From Chrysemys picta bellii (lineage: Eukaryota), in NCBI RefSeq assembly GCF_011386835.1, contig NC_088801.1:1860001-1924000 (forward strand): a stretch of 64,000 nt of DNA, given 5' to 3'. Positions within the stretch are counted from its first letter, which is position 1. Every line of letters begins with the position of its first letter. The position numbers and the translations under genes were made by a program. Below the pieces are notes generated by a model. The model was given only the letters and a program-made list of their open reading frames with translations. It was not told the DNA's origin and did no database searches. Positions 1 to 16,600 of this stretch are shown in pieces.

Positions 1-197
1 AGGGACAGGGCAGCCCCTGGTGTCGGTGCCCCAGACTTGTACCAGCCGTGGCCCCGCATGTTGGAGGTTGGGGCCACCCCCCCCCGACATGCCCAAGGGG
101 CAGCTCCAAGGTGGGCATGGGCCTGCACCGTGTGCATCTCTTGTGGGGCTTGGTGCCACCTCCCCCGCGGCGCTGCCCCCCCGCCCCGCGGACCCAC

Positions 198-3100
198 CTG
201 CAGGAGGTGCTGCAGCAGGCACTGGTCGGGCTGCAGCCGAGCCCAGAACTCGCTGAAGGCCGAGCCCCGGGCGAAGTCAGAGCCCCGCTGGCCGCTCACC
301 AGCACCACGTTCCCGTGCCGCCCGGATGCCAGCAGCTTCTTGGCCAGCGGGCCCGGGTAGCTCTGGTCGAGGAAGAGGAAGACCCTGCGGGCGCTGCAGC
401 CCTCCAAGTCGGCCAGGAGCTCGGCCACAGGGTAGCGCTCCTTGGGGTCGGCCTGCGGGGGGGGGCAGAGTGTGCCCGTCAGTGCCCTTCCCCCGCCTGC
501 TCACAGCACAGAGGGGAGGGCCCCCCCCCCCAAACACCAGCTGCATGGAGACTCCAGGCAGGAGATCAAGGGAATTCCAGCAGCCCAGCACTTGAAAGGG
601 GGGAATGGGGGGGGGTTTCCCACCCACCCAGCGCAGATGAAAGCGCCAAGCCGGGGCCTTTGAAGTGCAGCAGATCAGAGGCAAGGGGGGAGGGCAGCGA
701 GCTCACCTCCACCTGGAGATCAATGGGGGGGCACCTGGTTCTCTCAGCCCCGCCGCGGGGGGCAGCCAGCTGCCGTGGGAGACGCCCAGAGCCACGGAGT
801 CACCCCACATCCCCTGGCTGCAGAGAGACCCACTGCCCCAGGGAGCCAGGCGAGGGCACAGCCTGGCAGTGGGGGCCGGGAACCCAGCTGAGGGGTGCCC
901 GCACAGCGCCCCACTCACGATGCCGTTCTTGTTGGTGTCCCACAGGAGCATGGTGCCGTCGCTCCAGGTGGGGCTGTTCAGGTAAAGCACCAGCGAGTCG
1001 GCGCAGTGCCGCGTGCGGCACACCAGCGCCAGGTGGCTGCGGATCACCAGCTTCTCCGTGGCTGGATACACGTCGCCCACCTCCGCGGCCACTGGGGGCA
1101 GAGGGCACAGACACCCGTCAGTGAGGCCTCGGGCAGCGCCCGCCCAGAGCCTCCGCCCCGTCCCCCCGGCTTCCTGGGCCTCCCCCAGCCACCTCCTGCC
1201 TGTCGCTACAGGCCCAACCCTGTCACCACACCCTGCATCATGCCTCTGGCCTGGTCTCCTCTCTGCCCATATCCCCGCCCAGCCCCCTGTGCTCATCCCC
1301 CTGCGCCTGGTACTGCCCCACCTCGCCCCTGCCCTGCGGGGCTGAATGGGGGAGGGAGAAGGCTGGTGCCAACTGCAGGAGAGGGGGAGGGGCTGTGCCA
1401 ATCAGTGCCCTAAGCCTTGAGTCACTTGGGCCCAGTCCACGGGGTCTCCACCCCACACCTGGAGGCAGCGCAGAGACCCGGCGTCGGGACCAGCGCTGGT
1501 GCCCAAAGCCCCAGTTAGCCCCTGCTGGAGGGGTCGGGGGGCGACTCACAGGAGTTCCCCATGGCCTGGTACCCCCCCCCGGGGAGTCACTCGAGCCCCC
1601 AGCCGCCCCCGGGGCCGCAGGCCCTGACCTGGCGCCTGGCCATCGCCCGCGAAGAAGGCCTTGATGTGCTCCTGCCGGAAGCCGTTCCGCCGCAGCATCT
1701 GGGCGAAGAGCCGCAGGTTGCGGGCGTGGTGGGGGTAGGTGATCTGGTCCTGCCAGCCGCCTGGGGGGGGGCACAGCGTTAAGGGCAGCATGGGGCTCGG
1801 CCGGCTGGGCAGGGAGGGGGCACCAAGGCCAGTGTGTCTGCAGCCCTAAGGGAGGGGCCAGAGCCTGGCAGCACCCACCAATGGGATGTGGGGGAGGCAC
1901 CATGCCACTCGGGCTCTGATGGGGCACCCAGCTCCCAGCAGCAGGACTCGGCCCCTCAGCGCCAGGAGAGGGCAAGGGCAACCCCCGTTCAGCCCCAGGA
2001 AAGCCAGAGCCCGGGGCAAGCCGCCCTCCAGCATGGCCAGGGGGTGAGCCCCCACTCAGCCTCGCGGCCTGGAGACACCCCAGCCCAACCCACTTCCCCC
2101 AGGGCCCTCAGCTGGGAAATGCCTTTAACCCCCAGTCTATGGGGCTGGAGCCAAACTGACGGCCCCGTGTCCCATTCCCCGACCCCCTGAGCCAGCCAGT
2201 CCCCTGCCCTGGGGCCGGGTCAGAGCCAGCGCCCCCTAGAGGGGAAGGAGCGTGTCCCATCCCCCACCCTGGGGCACACCTGAGAGGAGCACGGCGTGGT
2301 CACAGGTCTGGTACATGCGGCAGGACTTGTGGGCGGGCAGCTGCTGCCGGTGGCACCGGCGGGTGTTCTTGTCCAGCTCGCAGCGAGCGGCCATGGGGCT
2401 GGGGCTGACCACGGGGAGCGGCTGCGGACACGGGCCGAATCCCGGCAGCTCTGCCAGGAAAAGCAACAGGTGATATGTGGTAGGACTGGCAGACAGACAG
2501 AGGGGGGCAGGGCCCACAGACAGACAGACAGAGGTGGAGTGGGGCCCACAGACAGATGGGGCAGGGCCCACAGACAGTCAGACAGAGGCGGGGTGGGGCA
2601 CACAGACAGACAAAGGCGGGGTGGGGCACACAGACAGACGGAGGCGGGGCGAGACCGACAGACAGAGGTGGGGTGGGGCACACAGACAGACAGAGGTGGG
2701 GTGGGGCCCACAGACAGATGGGGGCAGGGCCCACAGACAGACAGACAGAGGCGGGGTGGGGTACACAGACAGACAGACGGAGGCAGGGCGGGACCCACAG
2801 ACAGACAGACAGAGGTGGGGTGGGGCACACAGACAGACGGAGGCGGGGTGGGGCACACAGACAGACAAACAGAGGCAGGGTGGGGCACACAGACAGACAG
2901 ACAGACAGAGGCGGGGCAGGACTGACAGACAGACAGAGGCGGAGTGGAGCCCACAGACAGATGGGGGCAGGGCCCACAGACAGACAGATGGAGGCGGGGT
3001 GGGGCACACAGACAGACAGACTGAGGTGGGGCGGGACCCACAGACAGACAGACTGAGGCGGGGCGGGACCCACAGACAGAGGCGGGGTGGGGCACACAGA

Positions 3101-6100
3101 CAGACAGACGGAGGCGGGGCAAGACCGACAGACAGAGGCGGGGTGGGGCACACAGACAGACAGAGGTGGGGCACACAGACAGACAGAGGTGGGGCGGGAC
3201 AGACAGACAGACAGACGGAGGCGGGGTGGGGCACACAGACAGACAGACGGAGGCGGGGCGGGGCACACAGACAGAGGTGGGGTGGGGCACACAGACAGAC
3301 AGAGGCGGAGTGGGGCCCACAGACAGACAGAGGCGGGGCGGGACAGACAGACAGATGGAGGCGGGGTGGGGCACACAGACAGACAGACGGGGGCGGGGCA
3401 CCCGCAGGCTCATGACAGCTGCCATGGCTGAGTGAGAATGGGGCAGAGGAGTGATGGGGGCAGAGCGCCGGGGTGCCCAGGGAACAGCCTCCTGCACTAG
3501 CAGGGCGGGGCCAGTCCCGGAGGGCCCGGGAAGACGGGGGCCAGTCAGCTGCGGGCAAGGCCCCGGGCCGGTAACCCCGGGTGGGCCCCAGCCCCAGCGG
3601 CCATTCCCTGGCCGAGGAGTGGAGCTGAGCCCTGGTCTCCGGGTGCCAGAGCTGCCCCTCGGTGCCGCCCCCCGGGGTCCCCGCGCACCCACCTACGCAG
3701 TGCAGCCTCTGCTGGCGCTTGGGGTCCTGCGCCGCCACCACCAAGGGCAGGAAGTGAATCTCACAGACCCCCACCAGCGGCTCCTCCCGGCGGGCGCGCC
3801 CAGCCTCGGCGGCCTCCCGCGTGCCCTGCCCGCCGCGCCCTCGCCGCTTCGTCTGGTTCTCGCAGCGGCTCCGCAGGGCCAGGGTCAGGCACTCGTAGCT
3901 GCCTGTGGGGCGAGCAGACGCTGTGGGGGCCGGTCTGAGCACGCCAGGACGGGGAGCCAGAGCTCAGGGACACGGTGACCCACGCGGCCAGAGCCCGGGA
4001 CGCATCGCGCCAGTCACGGTGTGGGGCAGAACCGGCCACTTCACACCTAGTGCTGCAGAGCGCCCCCAACTGAGCCCCCGGCCCGCTCCCCGCACCCCCT
4101 AGCGCCCCCCACGGGCACTGGGGCCAGCCCTGACTGCCAGGGGAGAGCCCCCACCCGCTCCCCATGCACAGCGCCCCCTAGCGCCCCCCACGGGCACTGG
4201 GGCCAGCCCTGACTGCCAGGGGAGAGCCCCCGACCGCTCCCTGCGCACAGCGCCCCCTAGAGCCTCTCACGGGCACTGCGGCCAGCCCTGACTGCCAGGG
4301 GAGAGCCCCCACCCGCTCCCCATGTACAGCGCCCCCTAGCGCCCCCCACGGGCACTGGGGCCAGCCCTGACTGCCAGGGGAGAGCCCCCACCCGCTCCCC
4401 ATGCACAGCGCCCCCTAGCGCCCCCCACGGGCACTGGGGCCAGCCCTGACTGCCAGGGGAGAGCCCGCCCCATCGCTGCGCACAGCGCCCCCTAGCACCC
4501 CCCACCGGCACTGGGGCCAGCCCTGACTGCCAGGGGAGAGCCCCCACCCGCTCCCCATGCACAGCGCCCCCTAGTGCTCCCCACGGGCACTGGGGCCGGC
4601 CCTGACTGCCAGGGGAGAGCCCCCTACTGAGCCCCCACCCGCTCCCCATGCACAGCGCCCCCTAGCGCCCCCCACGGGCACTGCGCCAGCCCTGACTGCC
4701 AGGGGAGAGCCCGCCCCATCGCTGCGCACAGCGCCCCCTAGTGCTCCCCACGGGCACTGGGGCCAGCCCTGTCTGCCAGGGGAGAGCCCCCACCCGCTCC
4801 CCATGCACAGCGCCCCCTAGCGCCTCTCCCGGGCACTGCGCCAGTCCTGACTGCCAGGGGAGAGCCCGCCCCATCGCTGCGCACAGCGCCCCCTAGCGCC
4901 CCCCACGGGCACTGGGGCCAGCCCTGTCTGCCGGGGGAGAGCCCCCGACCGCTCCCTGCGCACAGCGCTCCCTAGCGCCCCCCACGGGCACTGGGGACAG
5001 CCCTGACTGCCAGGGGAGAGCCCGCCCCATCGCTGCGCACAGCGCCCCCTAGTGCTCCCCACGGGCACTGGGGCCAGCCCTGACTGCCAGGGGAGAGCCC
5101 GCCCCATCGCTGCGCACAGCGCCCCCTAGCGCCCCCCCACGGGCACTGGGGACAGCCCTGACTGCCAGGGGAGAGCCCCAACCCGCTCCCCATGCACAGC
5201 ACCCCCTAGCGCCGCCCACGGGCACTGGGGCCGGCCCTGACTGCCAGGGGAGAGCCCCCTACTAACACAGCGCCCCCTAGCGCCGCCCACGGGCACTGGG
5301 GCCGGCCCTGTCTGCCGGGGAGACCCCCCCCAAGCCCCAGGGGGAGGCAGCCGCCGCAGGTTGCGCACCCCCCGCCCCTGGCCGGACCCGGCTCCCAGGG
5401 CAGGACACGGGGCCATGTCTCGCCTTGGCCCCAGCCCCTCCGCAGACGCCGGGGCTGCGGAGCCGGGACCTGTCCAGGCGGGCCGGGGGCAGGCGCAGCC
5501 TCCGGGGTCCGGCTGCCCCACGCCAGACAGGCGGGGTAAGGGGGCTGCGCCGGCGGCTCTAGCGACCCTCCAATCCCCGGGGCCACTTACTGGAGCCGGG
5601 GCGCGCCCGCCATCTGCCCCATCGCTCCGAGACTGGGGGAGAGAAGAGGCCGCGGGCGCTGCCGGGACGGAGGGGACCGGACCGGACCAGGCCGGGCTCC
5701 GGGGCACGAGGGGGGCTGTGGCGGGGACCGGGGGCGGACGCGGGCCAGGCCGGGCTCGGAAGGGGACGGGGAGCGGGGCTCGGGGGCACGAGGGGGGCCT
5801 GGGACCGGGGGCGGACGGGGAGCGGGGCACAGAGGGGACATAGGGGCGGGGACCGGGGGCGGACGAGCTCGGGGCGGGGAGCGGGGCTCGGGGGCACGAG
5901 GGGAGGGGGACCGGGGGCGGACGGGGAGCGGGGCACAGAGGGGACATAGGGGCTGGGCCGGGGGCGGACGGGGAGCGGGGCACAGAGGGGACATAGGGGC
6001 TGGGCCGGGGGCGGACGGGGACCGGGGCACAGAGGGGACATAGGGGCTGGGGCGGGTACCGGGGGCAGACGGGGAGCGGGGCACAGAGGGGACATAGGGG

Positions 6101-6767
6101 CTGGGCCGGGGGCGGACGGGGAGCGGGGCACAGAGGGGACATAGGGCCGGGGGCGGACGGGGAGCGGGGCACAGAGGGGACATAGGGGCTGGGCCGGGGG
6201 CGGACGGGGAGCGGGGCACAGAGGGGACGTAGGGGCTGGGCCGGGGGCGGACGGGGAGCGGGGCACAGAGGGGACATAGGGGCTGGGCCGGGGGCGGACG
6301 GGGACCGGGGCACAGAGGGGACAGAGGGGCGGGGACCGGGGCGGCCGCGGGCCGGCCGGGCGCTCACCCAGGTAGACGCGGTCCGGGCCCCGGCAGCGCC
6401 GCGGGCTGACGCCGAAGTCCAGGTGGAAGAGCCGCAGCGGGTGGCCGAAGCTCGCCCCGGGGCTGGGGTCCAGCAGCAGCAGCGCGTCGTGCGCGGGGGG
6501 CGCCCCGGGGCCGCCCCGGGGGGCGCCGCTGGCCGCGGCCGAGCCGTCGGGGAGCAGCGCCCGCAGCTTGTGGCCGGGCCGGGCGGGCTCCGACACGTAG
6601 AGCGCGGGGCACTCGGGCTGGGGGCCGCCCCGCGGGGCGCACGGAGCCGCCTGCAGGTGCCGCAGGGCGGCCGCCCCCCAGCGCCGCAGCCGGGGCTGGG
6701 CGAAGCGGCCGGAGCCGCCCAGGGGCTGCGGCAGGGCGGCCAGGAGCAGCAGCAGCAGAGGGGCCAT
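198..6767 (-). CDS. Uncharacterised secreted protein with a C-terminal peptidase C13/legumain-like (clan CD) domain, predicted catalytically dead; 3' end unresolved
   Basis: Hand-spliced exons 6767-6368, 3902-3693, 2450-2280, 1760-1629, 1091-919, 452-198. All are GT-AG with phases 1,1,1,1,0,0 and give 447 stop-free codons. Starts MAPLLLLLLAALPQPLGG (signal-peptide-like). Later motifs HAVLLSGG, YPHHARN, LRRNGFRQEHI, DSLVLYLNSP, RRVFLFLDQSYPG, NVVLVSG, FSEFW fall in the same order as the legumain core motifs. No stop codon located; the last exon(s) may lie near or beyond base 1. Confidence 0.8.
2483..3405. repeat. Complex micro/minisatellite of (ACAG)n blocks alternating with GGGGTGGGGC/GGCGGGGC blocks
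   Basis: Recurring cagacagacaga and gaggcggggtggggcaca units in intron 2 of the unnamed gene. Explains the TDRQ/SVCL low-complexity ORFs. Confidence 0.95.
4085..5330. repeat. ~79-bp minisatellite, about 16 copies, each with a CTCF-like motif
   Basis: The CCCCTAG anchor recurs near 4100, 4179, 4258, 4337, 4416, 4493, 4572, 4663, 4739, 4818, 4894, 4973, 5050, 5127, 5207 and 5278. Confidence 0.95.
5780..6340. repeat. ~47-bp G-rich minisatellite
   Basis: Unit ggggcacagaggggacataggggctgggccgggggcggacggggagc repeated in intron 1 of the unnamed gene. Confidence 0.95.
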
Positions 6768-7084
6768 AGAGGGGACCGGGCTCGCGTCCCGCTCCCCCCG
6801 GCTCTGCCCTCCCGGGTCCCGGCCGGTCCTGGAGGCGGGAGCCCCGGCTGGAGGGACCCTGGGCTGAGGCGCGGCCGGGAGCCCCGCTGCTTACCCCGAC
6901 CCTGCCAGCGCCGGGCCGGCTGGAGGCGAGGGGGGAGCGGGCGGAGTCAGGCCCCCCTGGGCGCCGGGGAGGAGTCGGGCGGATGCAGCCTCGGTCCCTG
7001 CTAGAGTCATGAGCGGGATGCTGAGGGCCCGCCCTGGGAGCGAGTCACAAGTGACCCAGGTCTGGGGCGGGAGGGGGTGCGCGG

Positions 7085-7745
7085 GGAGGGGGGGGAGCCC
7101 AGGGCTGGTGTGGGAGGAGATGGGGGGGAGAGCCCAAGGCTGGGGCAGCAGGGGGCTCGGGGGGCAGGGAGGAGAGCCCAAGGCTGGGGCGGCAGGGGGT
7201 GCAGGTGGGGGATAGCCCAGGGCTGGGGCAGGTGGGGGGGCAGGTGGGGGTGAGCCCAGAGCTGGGGCGGGAGGGGGTGCGGATGAGGGGACAGCCCAGG
7301 GCTGGGGCAGGAGGGTGTGCGGATGGGGGGTGAGGGGACAGCCCAGGGCTGGGGCGGTGGGGGGTGCAGATGGCGGTGAGCCCAGGGCTGGGGCGGTGGG
7401 GGGTGCGGATGAGGGGACAGCCCAGGGCTGGGGCAGGAGGGGGTGCAGGTGGGGGACAGCCCAGGGCTGGGGCAGGTGGGGGTGCAGGTGGGCGGGAGCC
7501 CAGGGCTGGGGCAGCAGGGGGTGCAGGAGGGGGTGCGGATGGGGGGTGAGGGGACAGCCCAGGGCTGGGGCAGGAGGGGGTGCAGGTGGGGGTGCGGATG
7601 GGGGGTGAGGGGACAGCCCAGGGCTGGGGCAGGAGGGGGTGCAGGTGGGGATAGCCCAGGGCTGGGGCAGGTGGGGGTGCAGGGGGGGACAGCCCAGGGC
7701 TGGGGCAGGAGGGGGTGCAGGGGGGGACAGCCCAGGGTGCGGGTG
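7085..7745. repeat. G-rich minisatellite (agcccagggctggggcaggagggggtgca-type unit)
   Basis: Many degenerate copies of cagcccagggctggggc just upstream of the unnamed gene's ATG. Confidence 0.9.
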
Positions 7746-9144
7746 CAGGTCAGCCTTGGCAGTGGTTTCCCCTGCTGGACACCAAGCGGCCGGAGCCCCG
7801 GAGCCAGGCAGCCACTGGCAGGAAGGGCAGGAGGTGTTGGGAAGCCCCGTGCAGGGGCTGCAGGAGGTGGCATTCCCACGCCCTGGAGGGGCAGTGAGTG
7901 ACTCAGTTTGGCTGCCACTAGCCGGGGTTCTCTGCCATGCCGCCAGTGCCCTCCCGCGCCAGGTTCCCAGGGGCAGGCGGCTGTTCGCTGTGCGGGGCCT
8001 AGCAGTGCGGGCTGGGGCCCCAGGGGCACCGCACTCCAGCAGGGGCAGTTCGGCAGCAGCCGTAGCGCTTGCCAATGGGGTCAGGAGCAGCCCCCCTGTG
8101 GGTGATGGGAACAGGCCCGACCTGAGGGGTCAGCTGCCCATCCCCACAGCCTCCTCCTCAGACCCGATTCAGGCTCTGTCAGCTGCAGCCACACAAGGCC
8201 TCTGGGGCCAGCTGGGCACAGGGCCCTGATCAACTCAGCGCTCCCTGCCCGCTGTGCGGGGCCTGGCAGTCCAGAGCCTTGGCACCGCTTCCACCCGGGC
8301 AGGGACTCCCCCTGGGGCTGAAGCGCGTGGGGCAAGGCCCTGACTTGTGCAATGCAGGCAGGGGAACAAGGCTGCAGTGCGGAGCCAGCGCTCTTAGCCC
8401 CAGCCCAGGCAGGAGATCCGCTGGCACCGACTGCCAGGAGAAAGTGGGCAGAGGCCCTGCCCTAGCTCTGGGACCTGCTCCTGGAGAGGCCCCCAGCCCT
8501 GCACACAGCAAGGGCCGCCCCACCCGGGGGGAAGGCTTGCGCTTGCCCCTGCAGCCCTAATGGGAACAAGCTGCTCGAGGGGCTGCCTGGGTCCCCTCCT
8601 CCCTCCCGGCCGCCGCAGGGCAGGAAACGCTCCCGGGGGCATTTCCTGAGCACCAGCCGCCGGAGGCTGCACAGACCAGCACCAGCTTCGCTTGAACCGA
8701 ACGCAGGCGAGGCCCCAGGAGACAAAGCGACTCCAGTGTGGGACCCGGGGGCGGCCCCTGGCAGGCCAAGGATGGCACCCACAGGCCAGGGGCAGCGCTG
8801 TGCACTCACCAGCAGGGGAGGGCTGATCTGGGCCCAGCCCCTTCCCTGGCTCCAATGGGGCATTGCCCGCAGCCACCTGGGCCCCTGCTGGTGTCAGGCT
8901 GGGAGCCGGCCCGGAGCTGGGGCAACAGGAGGGGGACAGAGCCCAGAGCTGGGCCCACAGCAGCTCTAGCAGCCTGCAGAGAGCCGGGGGCTCAGGCCAG
9001 TTCCTATTGGCCCCTGGGCCCTGGCACTGCTTGTGCGGTACCTGTGCCAGGCCAGAGGAGTCAGGCTCTTGGATGGTGAGCGCAGCCAGGGCAGGGTCCC
9101 CCCCCCAGGAAAGAGACCAAGGACACCCCGCTTTTGGGTAGGAC

Positions 9145-9150
9145 TTTATT
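9145..9150 (-). terminator. Polyadenylation signal AATAAA, probably for ZFAND2B
   Basis: tttatt on the plus strand about 1.5 kb past the ZFAND2B stop codon. Confidence 0.6.
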
Positions 9151-10690
9151 TCCCTCCAGGCAGCACGTAGTAGCCAGACAGCCCCAGCCCTGCAGAGAGC
9201 TACCTTTCGCCCCCCCCCACTCCTGAGTGCCACAGCCGGCCCAGGCCCAAGCTCAGGGCACAGGAAGAGACGCCGCCCGCATGCGCTGGCCTCCTAGACG
9301 CCCAGCTGCAGAAGGTGCAGCTGTTACCCACTACAGCAAGACCCAGCCGCACCCGGAGTCCTGTGCACGCAGAGCTGGAGGGGAAGCAGCTTCCAGCGTG
9401 TCCAAGGGGCTGCACTGAGCAGGCAGCAGATGCCGGCACAAGGCCCGAGCGGAGGAGAGCCGCCCGCACCAACCCAGGAGCCTGGTGGCAGGGCACTGGC
9501 CCTGAATTCAGCAGGACTAGAAGGGGCTGCTCTGGGGAAGACTCCAGGGGCCTGGTCCCTATCGCCACGGGAGACGCTCCACCAGGGCTCCCCTTTGAGG
9601 TCAGGTGATGCCTTAGGGCAAGGGCTGGGTTTGGGGGGGCTCTTAGCAGAGGCAGTGGAGCGGTCTGTGATCACTGCGTGGAGGGGCTGTGTTCCCATGG
9701 GAAACAGGGCAGCTGCTTTTCCCGGCTTCCTGCCCCACATCCAGCACCCCACGAATTAAAGAGAGGGGCTGAGAAAGGCTGGCCTGGCCCCCCAGCTGAG
9801 CCCTGCCTGGAGGACGGGGGGGGGGAGTCACTCACAGGGGCAGGTGCCAGGCCTTGCAGGGCAGGGGGTTCTCCCACATAGCGTGGCCAGCGCAGGGAGC
9901 GCAGCTGCAGGGCCCATGGGTGGCTAACGAGGACAGGGCTGAGTCCCCATGGGGGGAAATGAGCGTTACCCAGCCATTACCTGAGGCTACAACCCTCCCT
10001 ACCCCCCGGGCACCCCAGGGAGCTGACCTGGTGCTTTAGCACCGGGGGGGAGGGGGAAGAGGTGAGGGCAGTTCCGGCCCAGGGCGACGTGTGTAGAGCA
10101 GCCCGTCTCATTAAAGCATCCAGCAGGCCCTGCGCGGGGCTGGGCAGCGCTGAGCGGGGGTCTGTCCTTGTCCCTTTGTAGTGTGTGGGGCAGGGGACTG
10201 GACATGACCCAGCCTGGGTCAGAGCGCAGGTATTGGGGTCAAGCCACCCCCGGGTGTAACACTCCACCTCCAGGAGAGGTGCCCCCCCATTTCACCCCAC
10301 TCTCGGCACTGTGGCAGGTGGGTGAGGGACCGAGGCACGATGCCCACCAGCGATCCCAAGGCCCACGGCTGCTGGCGTTGCTCCTCCTCCCCGGCTACGG
10401 CCGGCCTGCTGGCGGCTGCAGATCGCTCCTCCCACGCGGCTGCAGCCGGCTCTGGTCTGTGAGAACGGGGCGTGGCGCGAGGCGGCCCCATGCAGCTCAA
10501 AGCGGTTCAGCTACGGTCTATTGTCCAGGGAGCGGGAGCAGCCAGCGTTTGGTCAGTTGGTTCTAGCTGTGGAAGAGGCAGGAGAAGCCCCCGCCGGCCC
10601 TCTGCAGGTGGCGCTCGGGCAGGGCCTGGCAGAGCTGGGCGATGGTACCCGGCCCTGTGGACAGGCCCTAGGCATCGTGGTGCTCCCAGC

Positions 10691-13600
10691 CTAGAACATG
10701 CTGCAGTCTGATGGCCTCGAACTCCGGCTCTGGGCCTGTAATGTGAACACACCAGGAGTGAGCAAGCGCCCCCCTGCCCCGCCCCCCCGCAGCACTCAGG
10801 GGCCTCCAGGGCAGGGATGGGGCAGACTGGCGAAACCGGCCTGGGGTTGCTGCAGTCATCCCAGGCCTCGCCCCAGCAGGGCTGAGCCCTCCCCTTGGAG
10901 CTGGCAGGGGCTCGGCTCCCCTAGCCCGTGGGGTCTCTGCACTGCGGGAGGTCAGGCCGCCCCCGGGGACAGTCCTGCCTCGGCTCACGTCAGCCTGGGA
11001 ACGGGGGTGCAGAGCTCCAGCCCCCGGTGCCGAGGAGTGGGGAAGAACCTGGTGAGAGCCGGGCCTCAGCACGGAGCCTCCAGCAGCTCAACTCAGCTCA
11101 CCTGCTGCTGCTGCCGCCTCTGGTACTCCTCCTCGCTCGCAGCAAGCGCCCGCGCCAAGGCCAGGTCCTCCTCCTCCTGCGCGCTGCTGGAGACAGCCTT
11201 GTTCAGGGCCGGGAGACCCCGCAGCCCAGCCGCCCCAGGGACAGCTCCCAGCAGCGGGGTACTGAGCCCAGCGAGGCTGGGGGCGCCTTGGGGACTTGGG
11301 GAGCCAGGCTGCAGGCGTCCCAGCTGGGACGGAGCCAGGAGAACCAGGCCGAGGCCTGTCCCAGAGACACCCCTCTCCCCCCACATACAGAACCCCTGGA
11401 ACCGGGCTCAAGAGGGCGCCACCTGCTGGACTGCACCACTCCCTGCAGCAGCCTGGCCCTTCCCAGTCTATTCCTGCCTATTCGTTGGCAAGATGCGAAG
11501 GGATCACAGCCCAGGCCAGTTAACGCACCTCGGCCCCTCCCCAGCCAGTCCCCTTCCGGGACAGGCCCCCACAATGGTGCCCTGTGCAGGCTCGTGGGGT
11601 GCGGTTCTCAGGTGAATGTCAGCGTGTCACATGCCCTACCCAGCACGCCCTGCTGCGCCAGCCCCGTACCGTACCTGAGCGCCCGTGCCGAGCCGGGCAC
11701 CGATTCTGCCAGGGACATCTCCAGGGCTCGCTGCAGTGCCTCCTCTTCGCTCTGAAACGAGAGTGGGGTGTGCCCACGGCACTGCCCGGCTTAGCCACCC
11801 CCTGGAGAGAGGGCAGGACCAAGCCCAGAGGTCACGTTGCGGGGGGGCAGTCCTACCCTGACCCCCAGCCATGGGGGGGGGGGTCTGGCCCCCTCCCACC
11901 CTAGGCCCAGCTGTAGGCCGGGGAGTCGGACACGGTCAGAGGGAAGGCGCCCGGATTCAGAGCCTCCCCCGCAGGGAACAGGCTCACCGAGCAGCTCCTG
12001 GCGCCCCTCTGGCCTGTGGCAAGGGGCTGCTGCTGTCGCACGGCTCCACGTTCACACAGCAGAGCGAGGGAGGCTCCAGCAGAGGCCAGGCCTGCCCTGG
12101 CTCTCACGTGCAGGCTCTGTCATAGGGTCACTGAGCCCATCGCCGAGCGCCAGCCCAGGCGTCCTGGGGAGCGCTGGGCCTGGTCCTGCCATGTAGGAGG
12201 TGGGTGACGGAGCTGGCTCCAGAACAGGGCTCCTGTGCCTGGCTCTCTGCCCCCTCTGGCGGGTACCTCACACTCAGGGTGTACAGCCGGGGAGCGAGGG
12301 CACCCGGTTCGCCGTGCCAGGGCACCCACTGGGCAAGGTTCGCGCCGGGCCACTCACCAGTCCATTCTGCAGCGCAACGGCTGGGGGCGAGGTGCTGCTG
12401 GGCTGCCGTGCCGCCATCACGCCGCCTCTGGGTGCAAGAGGAGGAGCAGGGTTAGTGCTAGCACGCGGAGCAGCTCGGGGGGCCAACACCCAGGCAGGGA
12501 GACACACACCCCGGCTCCGTGCCCCTCCCAGCAGGCCAAAGGGGTGTGCCAGCCCCCCAGGGTGGGCGGGGCAGATTTCGACACACCGGCTCTCTGGAGG
12601 GGCTGCTGGGTCTAGCCACCCGAGCCAGGCCCTGGGGGCGAGAGGAGGGGTCGGCATCATCCTACCTGCTTGGGGCTGGAGCAGGGGGGCTGGCTGCCGG
12701 CCTGGAAGCTCCTCTGCTTGACGTCCCGGCTGCCACAGAGGAGGATGCCTGGGCTCTCGCGACCGCAGCATGTCTGCGACAGACACCGTCCGTCAGTAAC
12801 AGCTTCCCCTGAGGCCCCCCCCCCAGCAGAGCCCTCTGTCTCTGCATCCCTGGAGGTCCCCCGCCCCTCCCTCGGGTACTCAGCCCCAGCTGTGTGCCCT
12901 GAATCCTTCCTGCTGTCCTGTGTGCTCCCTCACCCCCTGCTCTCTGTGCAGTCACTCAGTGCCACGCGCCCCTCGGGCAGACCCGCTACGAACAGCAGGA
13001 GCGGCGGACGTGCTAGCGGCTTGCACCGCAGACCAGCGTCAAGGGATGGGGCACTTACTCCTCTGTACCTTGCGGCTGCAGCCCTGCAAGGGGGTCGCCT
13101 GGCACCAGAACGCAGACCCAGCCAGCGCGGCGCGGGGTGTGTGGAGCCGGGGCGCCCGGGGCAGACCCAGCCGGCGCGGGGCGGGGTGTGTGGAGCCGGG
13201 GCGCCCGGGGCAGACCCAGCCGGCGCGGCGCGGGGCGGGGTGTGTGGAGCCGGGGCGCCCGGAGCAGACCCAGCCGGCGTGGGGTGCGTGTGTGGAACCA
13301 GGGCACCCGGAGCAGACCCAGCCGGCACAGGGCAGGGTCCGTGTGTGGAGCCGGGGCGCCCGGGGCAGACCCAGCCGGCGCGGGGCGGGGTGGGGGGTGG
13401 AGCTGGGGCGTCTGGGGCAGACCCAGCCGGCGCAGGGCGGGGTGTGTGTGTGGAGCCGGGGCGCCCGGAGCAGACCCAGCCGGGGCGGGGGGCGTGGAGC
13501 CGGGGCGTCCGGGGCAGACCCAGCTGGCGCGGGGCGGGGCGGGGGGTGGAGCTGGGGTGCCCAGAGCAGGCCCAGCCAGCATGGAAGAGGCGGGTATGTG

Positions 13601-16600
13601 GGGGGGGGGGGGGGAGCTGGGACACGAGGCAGCGTGAGCGCAGATTATGCAGTTCTCCTGTCATCACCACTGTGGCGGGCATGGCTCTGCCCTGGCGAAG
13701 CACTTCCCCCCCCCACCACCGTCCGTTACCCGGCTCTGGAGAGGGGGCGCCCCACCCCATTGCAGTCGTGATCCAGGGGGTGCCGGTGCTTGAGGCAGAA
13801 GTTCCCGTGGCACTGGTCACAGATCACCTTCATCATCTCCCTCTGCTTGCAGCCAGGCTTCAGACACTTATTGGTGAAAATCTAACCAGAGACAAGGCAC
13901 CCGGTGAGCAGCTGTGAGCTCGCGGCCGTCCCCGACCGGCACGGAGCAGCCCAGCAGCAGAGTCCGGCCCCACTATGGGGTCACTACGCGGCCGGAGCCC
14001 TGGCAACGTACGTTCCAGGAGCTCCAACGCCAGCAGCAAGGCTGGGTCAGACCCCAGGTCTCCGAGTCCCAGCTCCAGCCCCCAGCCCCCAGCCACGCTG
14101 CTCTCTGGGGAATTCAGATCTAGCGCCAGGGTGGCTGGCAGAGACCAAGTGCTGCAGCACGAAGGGGCTTTGCCAGCTTGTAGATTCACGGGGGTAAGGC
14201 CGGAAGAGCTCACTTTGCCCCCCTCATCTGACCTGCGTGGCACAGGCCAGAGCGCCGCACGCTGGCACTCCCACAGCGAGGACCTGTCCTCTCCTATGCC
14301 GTACGGGGCACTACAGAGCGCAGCAGCTTGTGGCTGAATTGGGGTGGGTCCAGGCTCCTGTCACGGCCTCCAAGGGACGGTGGTTCCCATGGCAAATCGC
14401 CCCCCCGGGGGGAAAGTTGCTACTTCAAAACAAGATGCACTTTAGCTTCCATTAGATTTTGTGACGCCTCCCTCAGTTCCTCTCACAGCAGCAGCACCCC
14501 AGGCCCTGCTGTTCCAGGCCTGGGCTCCCTGCACCCAGCTCTCCTGGTATCCCCCAATCCCAACCCACAGCCCCCCACAGCTATTCCAGGCCTGGACACT
14601 GCCTGCCCCCCCCTCCTGATTTCCAGCCCCCAGCATTTCCATCCAGACCGTGCTGCAACCTGCTACTCATGTGGTTCAGCCCAATGCCCACTGGGGAGTC
14701 AGCGGAGAACAGCAGACTTGGCTCAATGCGCCCGGGCAGCATCGGCGAGTGCCAACCGGAGACCCCCCCTCCAAGCCCCGGAGGCACAGGCCCCTAGGCC
14801 AGGCGGAAGCGAGGTCGCAGCCTCCTACCTTGCGCTTGCGCTGGGCGGGGTCGGATTTGCAGTCTCGGTCGATGTGCTGCCCCACCACCACATCAGGCAT
14901 CTCCCCCTTTCGGACAGGGATGGGGATGTTGCAGAGGGGCACACGGGGACCTGCACGTCCTGTAACACAGCAGAGGCCAGGCTGAACACGCTCCCCAGGC
15001 CTGTCTGGGCCGTGCCGTTCGCCCCAGGGGCAGGAGCTGCCTTGCAGATGATGGTTCTCTCGTGATATTTTCTAACCCTTCGGATTATTTCTGCCTTTGC
15101 TAAGCAAGCAGTCTGGGGGCCCAGGCACACCCTGGGAACGCTGGCAGCTTGTGCTCGGGGCCAGGGAAAGAACAGGTGTTAAAGTGCAAAGGACGGTTCT
15201 GACCATCCTGAGCCCCTGCACACCACAGGCCACAGAACCGCACCCAGCCACGTGAGCGGAGCTAGGACGGAGCCTGCAGAGCAGCTGCCAGGCTTGGGTT
15301 AAAGCCGCTACCCCGTCCCTTGTGAACCGCAGCTCAGGCCTGGGCTGCATGGAGGAGTGACACTAAACGCCCAGGGTGTACAAACCCAGAGCCAAACACC
15401 GCAGCCACATCGCCCGAGGGAGCTCCAGCGAGGTCAAGGAAAGAATGCTGTGGGGGGGGGAATGGAAAACCCCTTCCGCTGCTGGATGCTGCCTCTACTC
15501 TCTAGGGTCACAGCTAAACCCCACAGCTTTACGGGTCACGCCCCCGGCCTGAGACCAGCGCCCCCCCGGAGCCCCTCTGCTGAGTGTGGCCTCGTGGGCA
15601 GCGCTCTGAGCCAAGCCCGTGCGAATTAGTTCGGCAGAGATGACGTGGCCACGTGCACTAGCCCTGCTGTGATCCCTCCGTCCCCGAGCGTTGGGGTTCT
15701 AGAAACCGTTCAGCTGGCCTGGCAGACGTCGCCACCTCGTGTTCTCCACCCCACCGCTGGGCTTGGCTGCGGGAGGATCGCCACAAGGATTCCAGGGCCG
15801 CCCAGTGCCCTACTGTCACTGGCCATGCTCGCCTCGCTCTCGGGCTAGCCAGACAGAGCTACACCTCAGGCAGCCCCATGGCTCCACCTGCCCCTCTCGT
15901 CCCAGGCTTAACTTGCACATGTGGGGTCTGATCCTGAGGTTTCGCCGGGAGCTGCCAGGTAGTCCCAACTCCGCTGGGAGCACGGTGCTAGGAGCCACCC
16001 CCAGCCACCGCTCCCCACTTACCTTCTTGTAGGCAGAGGTGCACTGGTGCTGGGTGTAGGTGATGTGGTCGGTGCAGAATATCTGCTCGCACGCGTCGCA
16101 CTTCAGAGGGAGAAAGTCTGGCAAGACAGGAGAGACAGCAGGCAGGTGAGGGGCCAAGGAGTCGGCGCTTCCCACTGCACAGCCCAGGGGCCAGCCCAGC
16201 CACGCACTGCCTGGGACAGCCAGCCTGCAGGGGCACAGGGCTGCAGCAACTGACAGACTGAGCCATTCCAGACTACCGCTCCCAGCATGCACCGCTGCAG
16301 CTTAAAAACAAACCCCACCTTTATGGCCTACGCAAAACGTTTGTAGCTTTTCAAATTTGTTTAATTGATCCGGAGTATTTCCTAGCAAGCCAAAGGGACC
16401 GCTTCTTCAGGGATGCCAAGGACTCAACCCCGAAACAGTCACCACGGTAGGAGAGACAGCAAGAGACTCTTGACAACGAGGGTTTGTAACCTCAGTGCCC
16501 GCCCTTCCCCTCCCCATGAGGAGACTAATGATGCCAGTCACTGAAATCCGAAGGGGGAACCGACCGAAGAGAAGCAGCAATGGGATCTGCAGGTCTCTGT

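Follow-up and report, generated by a model that had tools for sequence, protein, structure and literature searches.

We analysed a 64,000-nucleotide stretch of the painted turtle genome (Chrysemys picta bellii, contig NC_088801.1, positions 1,860,001 to 1,924,000; hereafter the window), whose left end contains exons 1-6 of LOC135974104, a gene with at least seven exons and the orthologue of zebrafish si:ch211-67e16.11. In the predicted structure, residues ~250-493 of its product form a caspase/legumain (clan CD) fold nearest to peptidase family C13, and the His/Cys pair typical of the clan is absent. Taken as a whole, the data are best explained, with fair probability in our judgement, if LOC135974104 encodes a secreted or lumenal, disulfide-bonded pseudo-peptidase with a C13-like fold that binds rather than cleaves. 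A sequence-only reading of the window had proposed an unnamed vertebrate gene whose secreted product has a legumain/C13-like domain of clan CD and is none of LGMN, PIGK, the caspases or MALT1; all tests run supported that domain assignment. The gene itself is already a RefSeq LOC entry; what is new is its characterisation, namely its nature, its range and its apparent loss from mammals.

The fold assignment comes mainly from an AlphaFold2 model of the RefSeq protein (P0082, 512 amino acids), built with 46 relatives in the alignment, which reached a mean predicted local distance difference test score (pLDDT) of 77.9 and a predicted template-modelling score of 0.81. A Foldseek search of this model against the PDB returned human legumain as the top match (E 6.8e-6), followed by PIGK, caspase-7, CED-3 and MALT1, and all 50 of the 50 listed VIA rows were clan CD or caspase-like (legumain, metacaspase-4, PIGK, caspase-6, MALT1 and GSU0716). 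The domain model thus holds both the caspase-haemoglobinase alpha/beta fold of MEROPS family C13 and the fold common to the caspase-1-like families of clan CD. All named neighbours in a language-model search, which provides leads only, were Peptidase_C13 clusters (scores 0.85-0.86). At the sequence level the signal is fainter: neither P0082 nor the six exon translations taken singly had a Pfam match above noise, and sub-threshold Peptidase_C13 matches at E <= 0.1 recurred in 15 of the 46 relatives (best E 3.2e-5), with a best bit score of 21.3 (P0023, E 2e-4) against a PF01650 gathering score of 22.8. Among PDB sequences, the full-length profile (A1) and a profile of the domain alone (A2) gave just weak matches to plant legumains (E 0.3-1.1), in the stretch from strand 1 through helix 1 to strand 2, where the domain profile aligned HAVLLSGGW...MLRRNGF with WAVLIAGS...ILRKGGV; a profile of strands 4-5 (A4) returned zero matches from the same sequences.

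In the clan CD fold, the catalytic His directly follows strand 3, and the Cys directly follows strand 4. Enzymes of this clan rely on a His-Cys catalytic dyad (PMC12445089). In the turtle model, the strand at 337-343 (SLVLYLN) is followed by S344-P345-T, with no His, and the strand at 385-390 (RVFLFL) by D391-Q392-S393-Y394, with no Cys, so that at the positions equivalent by topology neither the His-Gly and Ala-Cys of family C13 nor the clan CD dyad was found. The same substitutions run through the family. Among 196 aligned relatives, residue 345 is Pro in 195, the exception being a broken gene model, and residue 393 is Ser in 183, Asn in 9 (spiders, ticks and Daphnia), Thr in 2, Cys in 1 (P0227) and Arg in 1 (that same broken model, P0007). 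All 196 have Trp at W263, which lies in the loop following strand 1. The loop at the His position has no His except for N343H in six relatives, and the family alignment contains no conserved His in either of the loops that follow strands 3 and 4. In two relatives, the Ser falls near position 160 of the Pfam profile by local alignment, which, by legumain numbering, we take to be that of the expected legumain Cys. Asn at the former nucleophile position was recorded in P0242-P0249, P0255 and P0259 (spiders, ticks and Daphnia), and P0227 reads DQCF there, still with Pro at the His position. With no His/Cys pair, the protein is therefore classed as a non-peptidase homologue and not as a peptidase.

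The loops lining the former active-site cleft (W263, NSP345 and DQS393Y) are conserved far above the family average, and every family-invariant residue is present in the window product (W263, K318, C329, C334, P345, L354, D356, E367, E373, C381, A383, S393 and N410). Because the catalytic pair is lost while the cleft loops are near-invariant, we infer a binding function: the cleft would still hold a ligand, most simply a peptide or a protein segment, without cutting it.

Outside the C13-like domain, several features point to a product of the secretory pathway. Residues 4-12 have a mean Kyte-Doolittle hydrophobicity of 3.4, P0082 has no second hydrophobic or membrane-like stretch, and of the 167 relatives with a complete N-terminus 153 begin with the same hydrophobic feature, which makes the signal peptide of the sequence-only reading plausible. 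Seventeen cysteines are kept in at least 85% of relatives, and a sequon at N465 in 37 of 46. The N-terminal alpha+beta domain (~residues 24-141) has no recognisable fold. It is followed by a basic loop (residues 150-178, window 3769-3855) between the conserved C147 and C180, with pLDDT <50 at 156-177. Dibasic motifs mark this loop in 43 of 46 relatives, and 25 of the 46 have the furin-type R-x-[KR]-R there (RARR at 169-172 in the turtle), probably as a proprotein-convertase site. The product would accordingly be a secreted or lumenal, disulfide-bonded and N-glycosylated pseudo-peptidase, and convertases would cut its precursor at the basic loop into two chains that stay together.

Several points weigh against this reading. 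The equivalence of the His and Cys positions combines strand topology with the motif alignment of the sequence-only reading and approximate Pfam coordinates; the register at the His leaves a choice between two adjacent residues, S344 and P345, neither of which is His. As their nucleophile-position residue, 93% of members still have Ser, which leaves room for catalysis in most lineages. Binding rather than cleaving is also the default reading of any homologue that has no dyad, and for secretion, glycosylation, disulfides and convertase cleavage the evidence consists of sequence features. As to the fold, no family member examined reaches the PF01650 gathering score, and neither the full-length profile (A1) nor the domain profile found a significant legumain match among PDB sequences, so that C13 homology mainly rests on predicted structure. 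Finally, no mammal, bird, crocodilian or amphibian occurs among the matches listed (the best 120 of 162 for the lizard query P0004), a statement about protein matches and not about searched genomes, so that divergent members may have been missed.

The retained Ser raises the possibility of an active hydrolase or transpeptidase in which Ser393 has taken the place of the Cys nucleophile and another residue serves as general base, i.e., a clan CD scaffold with serine-type catalysis. The prevalence of Ser within a strongly conserved D-Q-S-Y-x-G loop, the near-invariance of the loops around W263 and N-S-P345, and the Cys of P0227 would all suit such an enzyme. However, the spider, tick and Daphnia orthologues with Asn and the two with Thr keep the rest of the loop, and since Asn replaces Ser while its surroundings stay conserved, a conserved Ser nucleophile is unlikely; the near-universal Pro at the His position and the absence of a conserved His after strands 3 and 4 argue in the same direction. 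We know of no active clan CD enzyme with Ser for Cys, and we regard this alternative as improbable. The protein could instead remain in the lumen of the endoplasmic reticulum (ER), the Golgi or the lysosome as a regulator or decoy of true C13 enzymes such as legumain or PIGK, rather than bind an extracellular ligand. Legumain and PIGK are the nearest folds, legumain is itself a lysosomal protein with a signal peptide, and two family fragments carry automatic names from glycosylphosphatidylinositol (GPI) biosynthesis. These names, though, have no Pfam domain behind them, the P0082 C-terminus bears no retention motif, and mammals keep both legumain and PIGK, yet no mammalian orthologue stands among the matches listed. 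We regard a lumenal regulator as an unlikely role.

Two more sceptical explanations concern the fold and the locus. The likeness to clan CD might be that of any three-layer alpha/beta sandwich, or might be an artefact of structure prediction, with no homology to C13: the family profiles found no significant PDB sequence match, no member passes the Pfam Peptidase_C13 cut-off, and the structural alignment to legumain has just 14% identity. We hold this to be very improbable. A decaying or mis-predicted gene at the turtle locus has next to no probability in our view. The setting is repeat-laden with 70-78% G+C, the donor of the last intron seems non-canonical, and the models of the relatives P0007, P0008 and P0028 are broken or chimeric, but the 447 codons are intact, three studies yielded spliced contigs, the stretches that align with other turtles are 89-95% identical, and no family-invariant residue is missing. 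A more far-reaching proposal, possible though doubtful, is that the family represents a new bilaterian-wide branch of clan CD with an N-terminal fold absent from the PDB, whose cleft has been re-used non-proteolytically, as a secreted receptor, carrier or signalling ligand for a specific peptide or glycan, or for chemistry new to this fold. If so, its loss from mammals and birds would have removed an entire extracellular pathway from the usual model organisms, one still open to study in zebrafish. Overall, we favour the binding pseudo-peptidase with a C13-like fold.

The sequence-only reading had further suggested that the domain is closer to bacterial C13-type peptidases than to legumain. Shape searches of predicted structures indeed returned bacterial PF01650 clusters as the nearest named neighbours, with template-modelling scores of 0.50-0.55 over 311-331 residues, an alignment that spans most of the query and more than the C13 domain alone, and the AlphaFold DB clusters named 'Peptidase C13' matched at E 1e-8 to 1e-6. 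On the other side, the N-terminal domain searched alone found animal family members only and no bacterial protein, and a scan of 185,579 prokaryotic genomes with a pattern from the domain alignment matched 14 stretches, none of which was confirmed, leaving no bacterial or archaeal relative. The evidence on the suggested bacterial affinity is therefore divided.

The gene model underlying these comparisons was confirmed. Rebuilding the minus-strand exons listed in Table 1, with exon 6 ending at 198, gave 1341 nucleotides (nt), or 447 codons with 0 stops, and once spliced these translate into a product that matches residues 1-447 of P0082 at 100% identity, P0082 being annotated as 'uncharacterized protein LOC135974104 isoform X2 [Chrysemys picta bellii]'. 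The RefSeq model is thus the same as the exon model read from the letters, in which all six exons have a polypyrimidine-AG acceptor, a GT donor and compatible phases, and adds 61 to 65 codons past the left end of the window. The proposed splicing of six exons into at least 447 codons was borne out by this identity together with spliced contigs. A candidate exon of 43 nt (~5592-5632) between exons 1 and 2 was dropped as unneeded, because exons 1 and 2 are in phase when joined directly and the product equals P0082.

Sequencing runs also contained the transcript. Fourteen small runs held 20-43% of the words sampled from window 198-2460, a stretch of which exons make up 32%, and contigs from four of them (X1, X3, X8 and X11) were aligned to window 150-2470. 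The runs X1, X3 and X8 belong to three studies and have their type listed as 'RNA?'. In the contigs of these three, the joints between exons 3 and 6 given in Table 1 are present exactly as modelled, with CT..AC ends on the plus strand; X11 yielded unspliced stretches only. A single X8 contig of 1190 nt joins exons 6-5-4-3 and continues with letters matching the window from 3695 (exon 2), and in X1 and X8 contigs the loose end at 2452 goes on as window 3695 onward, which adds a fourth junction to the three exact ones. The contigs without introns come from RNA, and the gene is expressed. The junction of exons 1 and 2 (6368|3902) is placed by identity to P0082 only.

The contigs corrected one exon boundary. 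Exon 6 had been located properly, but its transcribed end lies 13 nt beyond the proposed donor at 198, at 185, after which the contigs enter an off-window exon encoding AAGSSPGATL, i.e., residues 452-461 of P0082. Since the contigs leave the window sequence at 185 and AAGSSPGATL matches P0082, the donor of the last intron seen is probably the GC at 184-183 rather than the obvious GT at 197-196. Codon 448 reads GTG (Val) in the window vs Ala in P0082, which may be an allelic or an assembly difference. In intron 3, many contigs of 31-51 nt pile up at 2169-2219 in all four runs, with a depth of up to ~980 in X1 and X3 and a 1-nt deletion at 2201; a 32-mer from this pile-up occurs once only in the window, with no Rfam match, and the piece probably belongs to a dispersed transcribed repeat.

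Table 1. Exons, domain start and intronic tandem arrays of LOC135974104, in window coordinates.
Feature	Position	Strand	Details
Exon 1	6368..6767	-	400 nt; ATG 6767-6765; residues 1-133 + one base; signal-like hydrophobic N-terminus (residues 1-19) and first part of N-terminal domain; open frame, GT donor 6367-6366, 100% identity to P0082 residues 1-134
Exon 2	3693..3902	-	210 nt; end of N-terminal domain and basic disordered loop; AG acceptor, GT donor
Exon 3	2280..2450	-	171 nt; Cys-rich connector and strand 1 of C13-like domain (DHAVLLSG); joint 1760|2280
C13-like domain start	near residue 250, window 2313	-	in exon 3; model strand 255-260
Exon 4	1629..1760	-	132 nt; W263 (1755-1753), helix 1, strand 2; joints 1091|1629, 1760|2280
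Exon 5	919..1091	-	173 nt; YPATEK helix, strand 3 (SLVLYLN), S344-P345 (975-970), LLWD; joints 452|919, 1091|1629
Exon 6	185..452	-	268 nt by spliced contigs (255 nt in the sequence-only reading); strand 4 (RVFLFL), D-Q-S393-Y (S393 = 362-360), H408-x-N410, strand 5; joint 452|919
Intron 2 minisatellite	2490..3401		unit 28-32 nt, ~32 copies; Tandem Repeats Finder
Intron 1 minisatellite	4095..5331		unit 79 nt, ~16 copies; Tandem Repeats Finder
Intron 1 minisatellite	5801..6344		unit 47 nt, ~9 copies at 5911-6344, within a looser G-rich array; Tandem Repeats Finder

The family reaches far beyond turtles. A HMMER search with exon 6 alone against 1.84 billion representative proteins retrieved 72 relatives, and the best 120 of 162 matches of a search with the full-length lizard relative P0004 included turtles, squamates, lungfish, bowfin, gar, shark, ray and many teleosts, all of them named 'uncharacterized' or after the zebrafish clone (si:ch211-67e16.11) and none with a precomputed Pfam domain. 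Over the aligned stretches, the window product is 69% identical to a lizard, 55% to a shark and 37% to an amphioxus protein, and identity to chiton and amphioxus is 35-37% over >400 of its 447 residues. Members were found in molluscs (chiton, gastropods, bivalves and octopus), other spiralians (nemerteans, annelids and a bryozoan), arthropods (crustaceans, spiders, ticks, horseshoe crab, a scorpion, insects and a springtail), clade I nematodes, deuterostome invertebrates (sea stars, sea cucumbers, a crinoid, hemichordates and amphioxus) and vertebrates (cartilaginous and bony fishes, lungfish, squamates and turtles). A single entry labelled 'Mustela' clusters with tilapia and seems to be a contaminant, and two proteins of the first search, P0031 and P0045, are not relatives but low-complexity repeat proteins. 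The label of vertebrate gene hence holds for presence in vertebrates but is too narrow for a bilaterian-wide family, and 'unnamed' is apt insofar as the gene is called uncharacterized everywhere with a clone name for a symbol, although it does have a LOC entry. No literature on the family was found under the zebrafish symbol or as an inactive legumain or clan CD C13 homologue.

Public annotation of the family is uneven. The models P0007, P0008, P0028 and P0057 are broken or chimeric, with faults comprising a frame-shift in Caretta, a squamate fusion with ZFAND2B, an internal duplication and a fusion to a La/RRM protein; the probable cause is that introns rich in GC and repeats mislead gene predictors. 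Automatic GPI-biosynthesis names were attached to P0052 from Soboliphyme ('GPI inositol-deacylase') and to AlphaFold DB A0A4Z2CJQ4 ('PIG-X') with no supporting Pfam domain, and are probably mis-annotations, curious beside the kinship to the PIGK fold.

The introns of the turtle gene are full of repeats, as the sequence-only reading had noted, and because they carry the three large minisatellites of Table 1, a view by open reading frames breaks up the gene. A further G-rich tandem array (7124-7737; unit ~39 nt, with a 118-nt higher order, ~14 copies) lies just upstream of the gene start, between LOC135974104 and a ZFAND2B-like gene. The latter is directly upstream on the same minus strand (11671-14900), where three tblastn pieces are 67-81% identical to the AN1 zinc-finger/UIM part of P0008, a squamate gene model that fuses a family member with ZFAND2B. 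In Astyanax, the other of the two species whose neighbourhoods were compared, the family gene is flanked by a TTL-domain gene on one side and an ABCB6-like gene on the other. In human, ZFAND2B stands next to ABCB6 on 2q35, within the gene order RETREG2-ZFAND2B-ABCB6, and mammalian absence would therefore be a loss. The gene would then have dropped out of the ZFAND2B-ABCB6 interval in mammals and be unannotated in birds, crocodilians and amphibians. Elsewhere in the window, ten long open reading frames had no Pfam match and are probably products of the high GC content, and a search of window 1-16000 found no Rfam match.

Clan CD comprises caspases, legumain, GPI transamidase, separase and gingipains, with roles in cell death, antigen processing and protein anchoring. 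The family described here represents a further branch, from molluscs to turtles, in which both catalytic residues are lost and the cleft loops are almost invariant. For protease biology, it would provide a natural example of a secreted C13-type pseudo-enzyme, and for comparative genomics an old animal gene apparently dropped from a putatively conserved ZFAND2B-ABCB6 interval in mammals; the zebrafish orthologue makes a direct knockout possible. Its closest characterised counterpart, legumain (MEROPS C13; human LGMN, PDB 4n6o/4awb/7fql), shares ~14% identity with the turtle protein and has His and Cys where the latter has Pro (or Ser) and Ser. The C-terminal prodomain of legumain is absent from the turtle protein (no PF20985 match), which unlike legumain has a 230-residue N-terminal extension whose fold is not recognised. 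PIGK/GPI8, the catalytic C13 subunit of GPI transamidase (PDB 7wld_K/8imy_K), is an enzyme anchored in the ER membrane, and its His/Cys pair is active, whereas the turtle protein has neither a hydrophobic anchor nor a catalytic pair. Bacterial 'C13 family peptidase' proteins of Bacteroidota and Pseudomonadota resemble it in shape, but pass Pfam PF01650, which the turtle family does not. In their mode of action, the nearest parallels may be the c-FLIP pseudo-caspase and the cyanobacterial pseudo-orthocaspases, which have a caspase-type fold with His/Cys substituted and act by binding. These are intracellular relatives of family C14, whereas the turtle family is C13-like, predicted to be secreted, equipped with an N-terminal domain of its own and spread across Bilateria.

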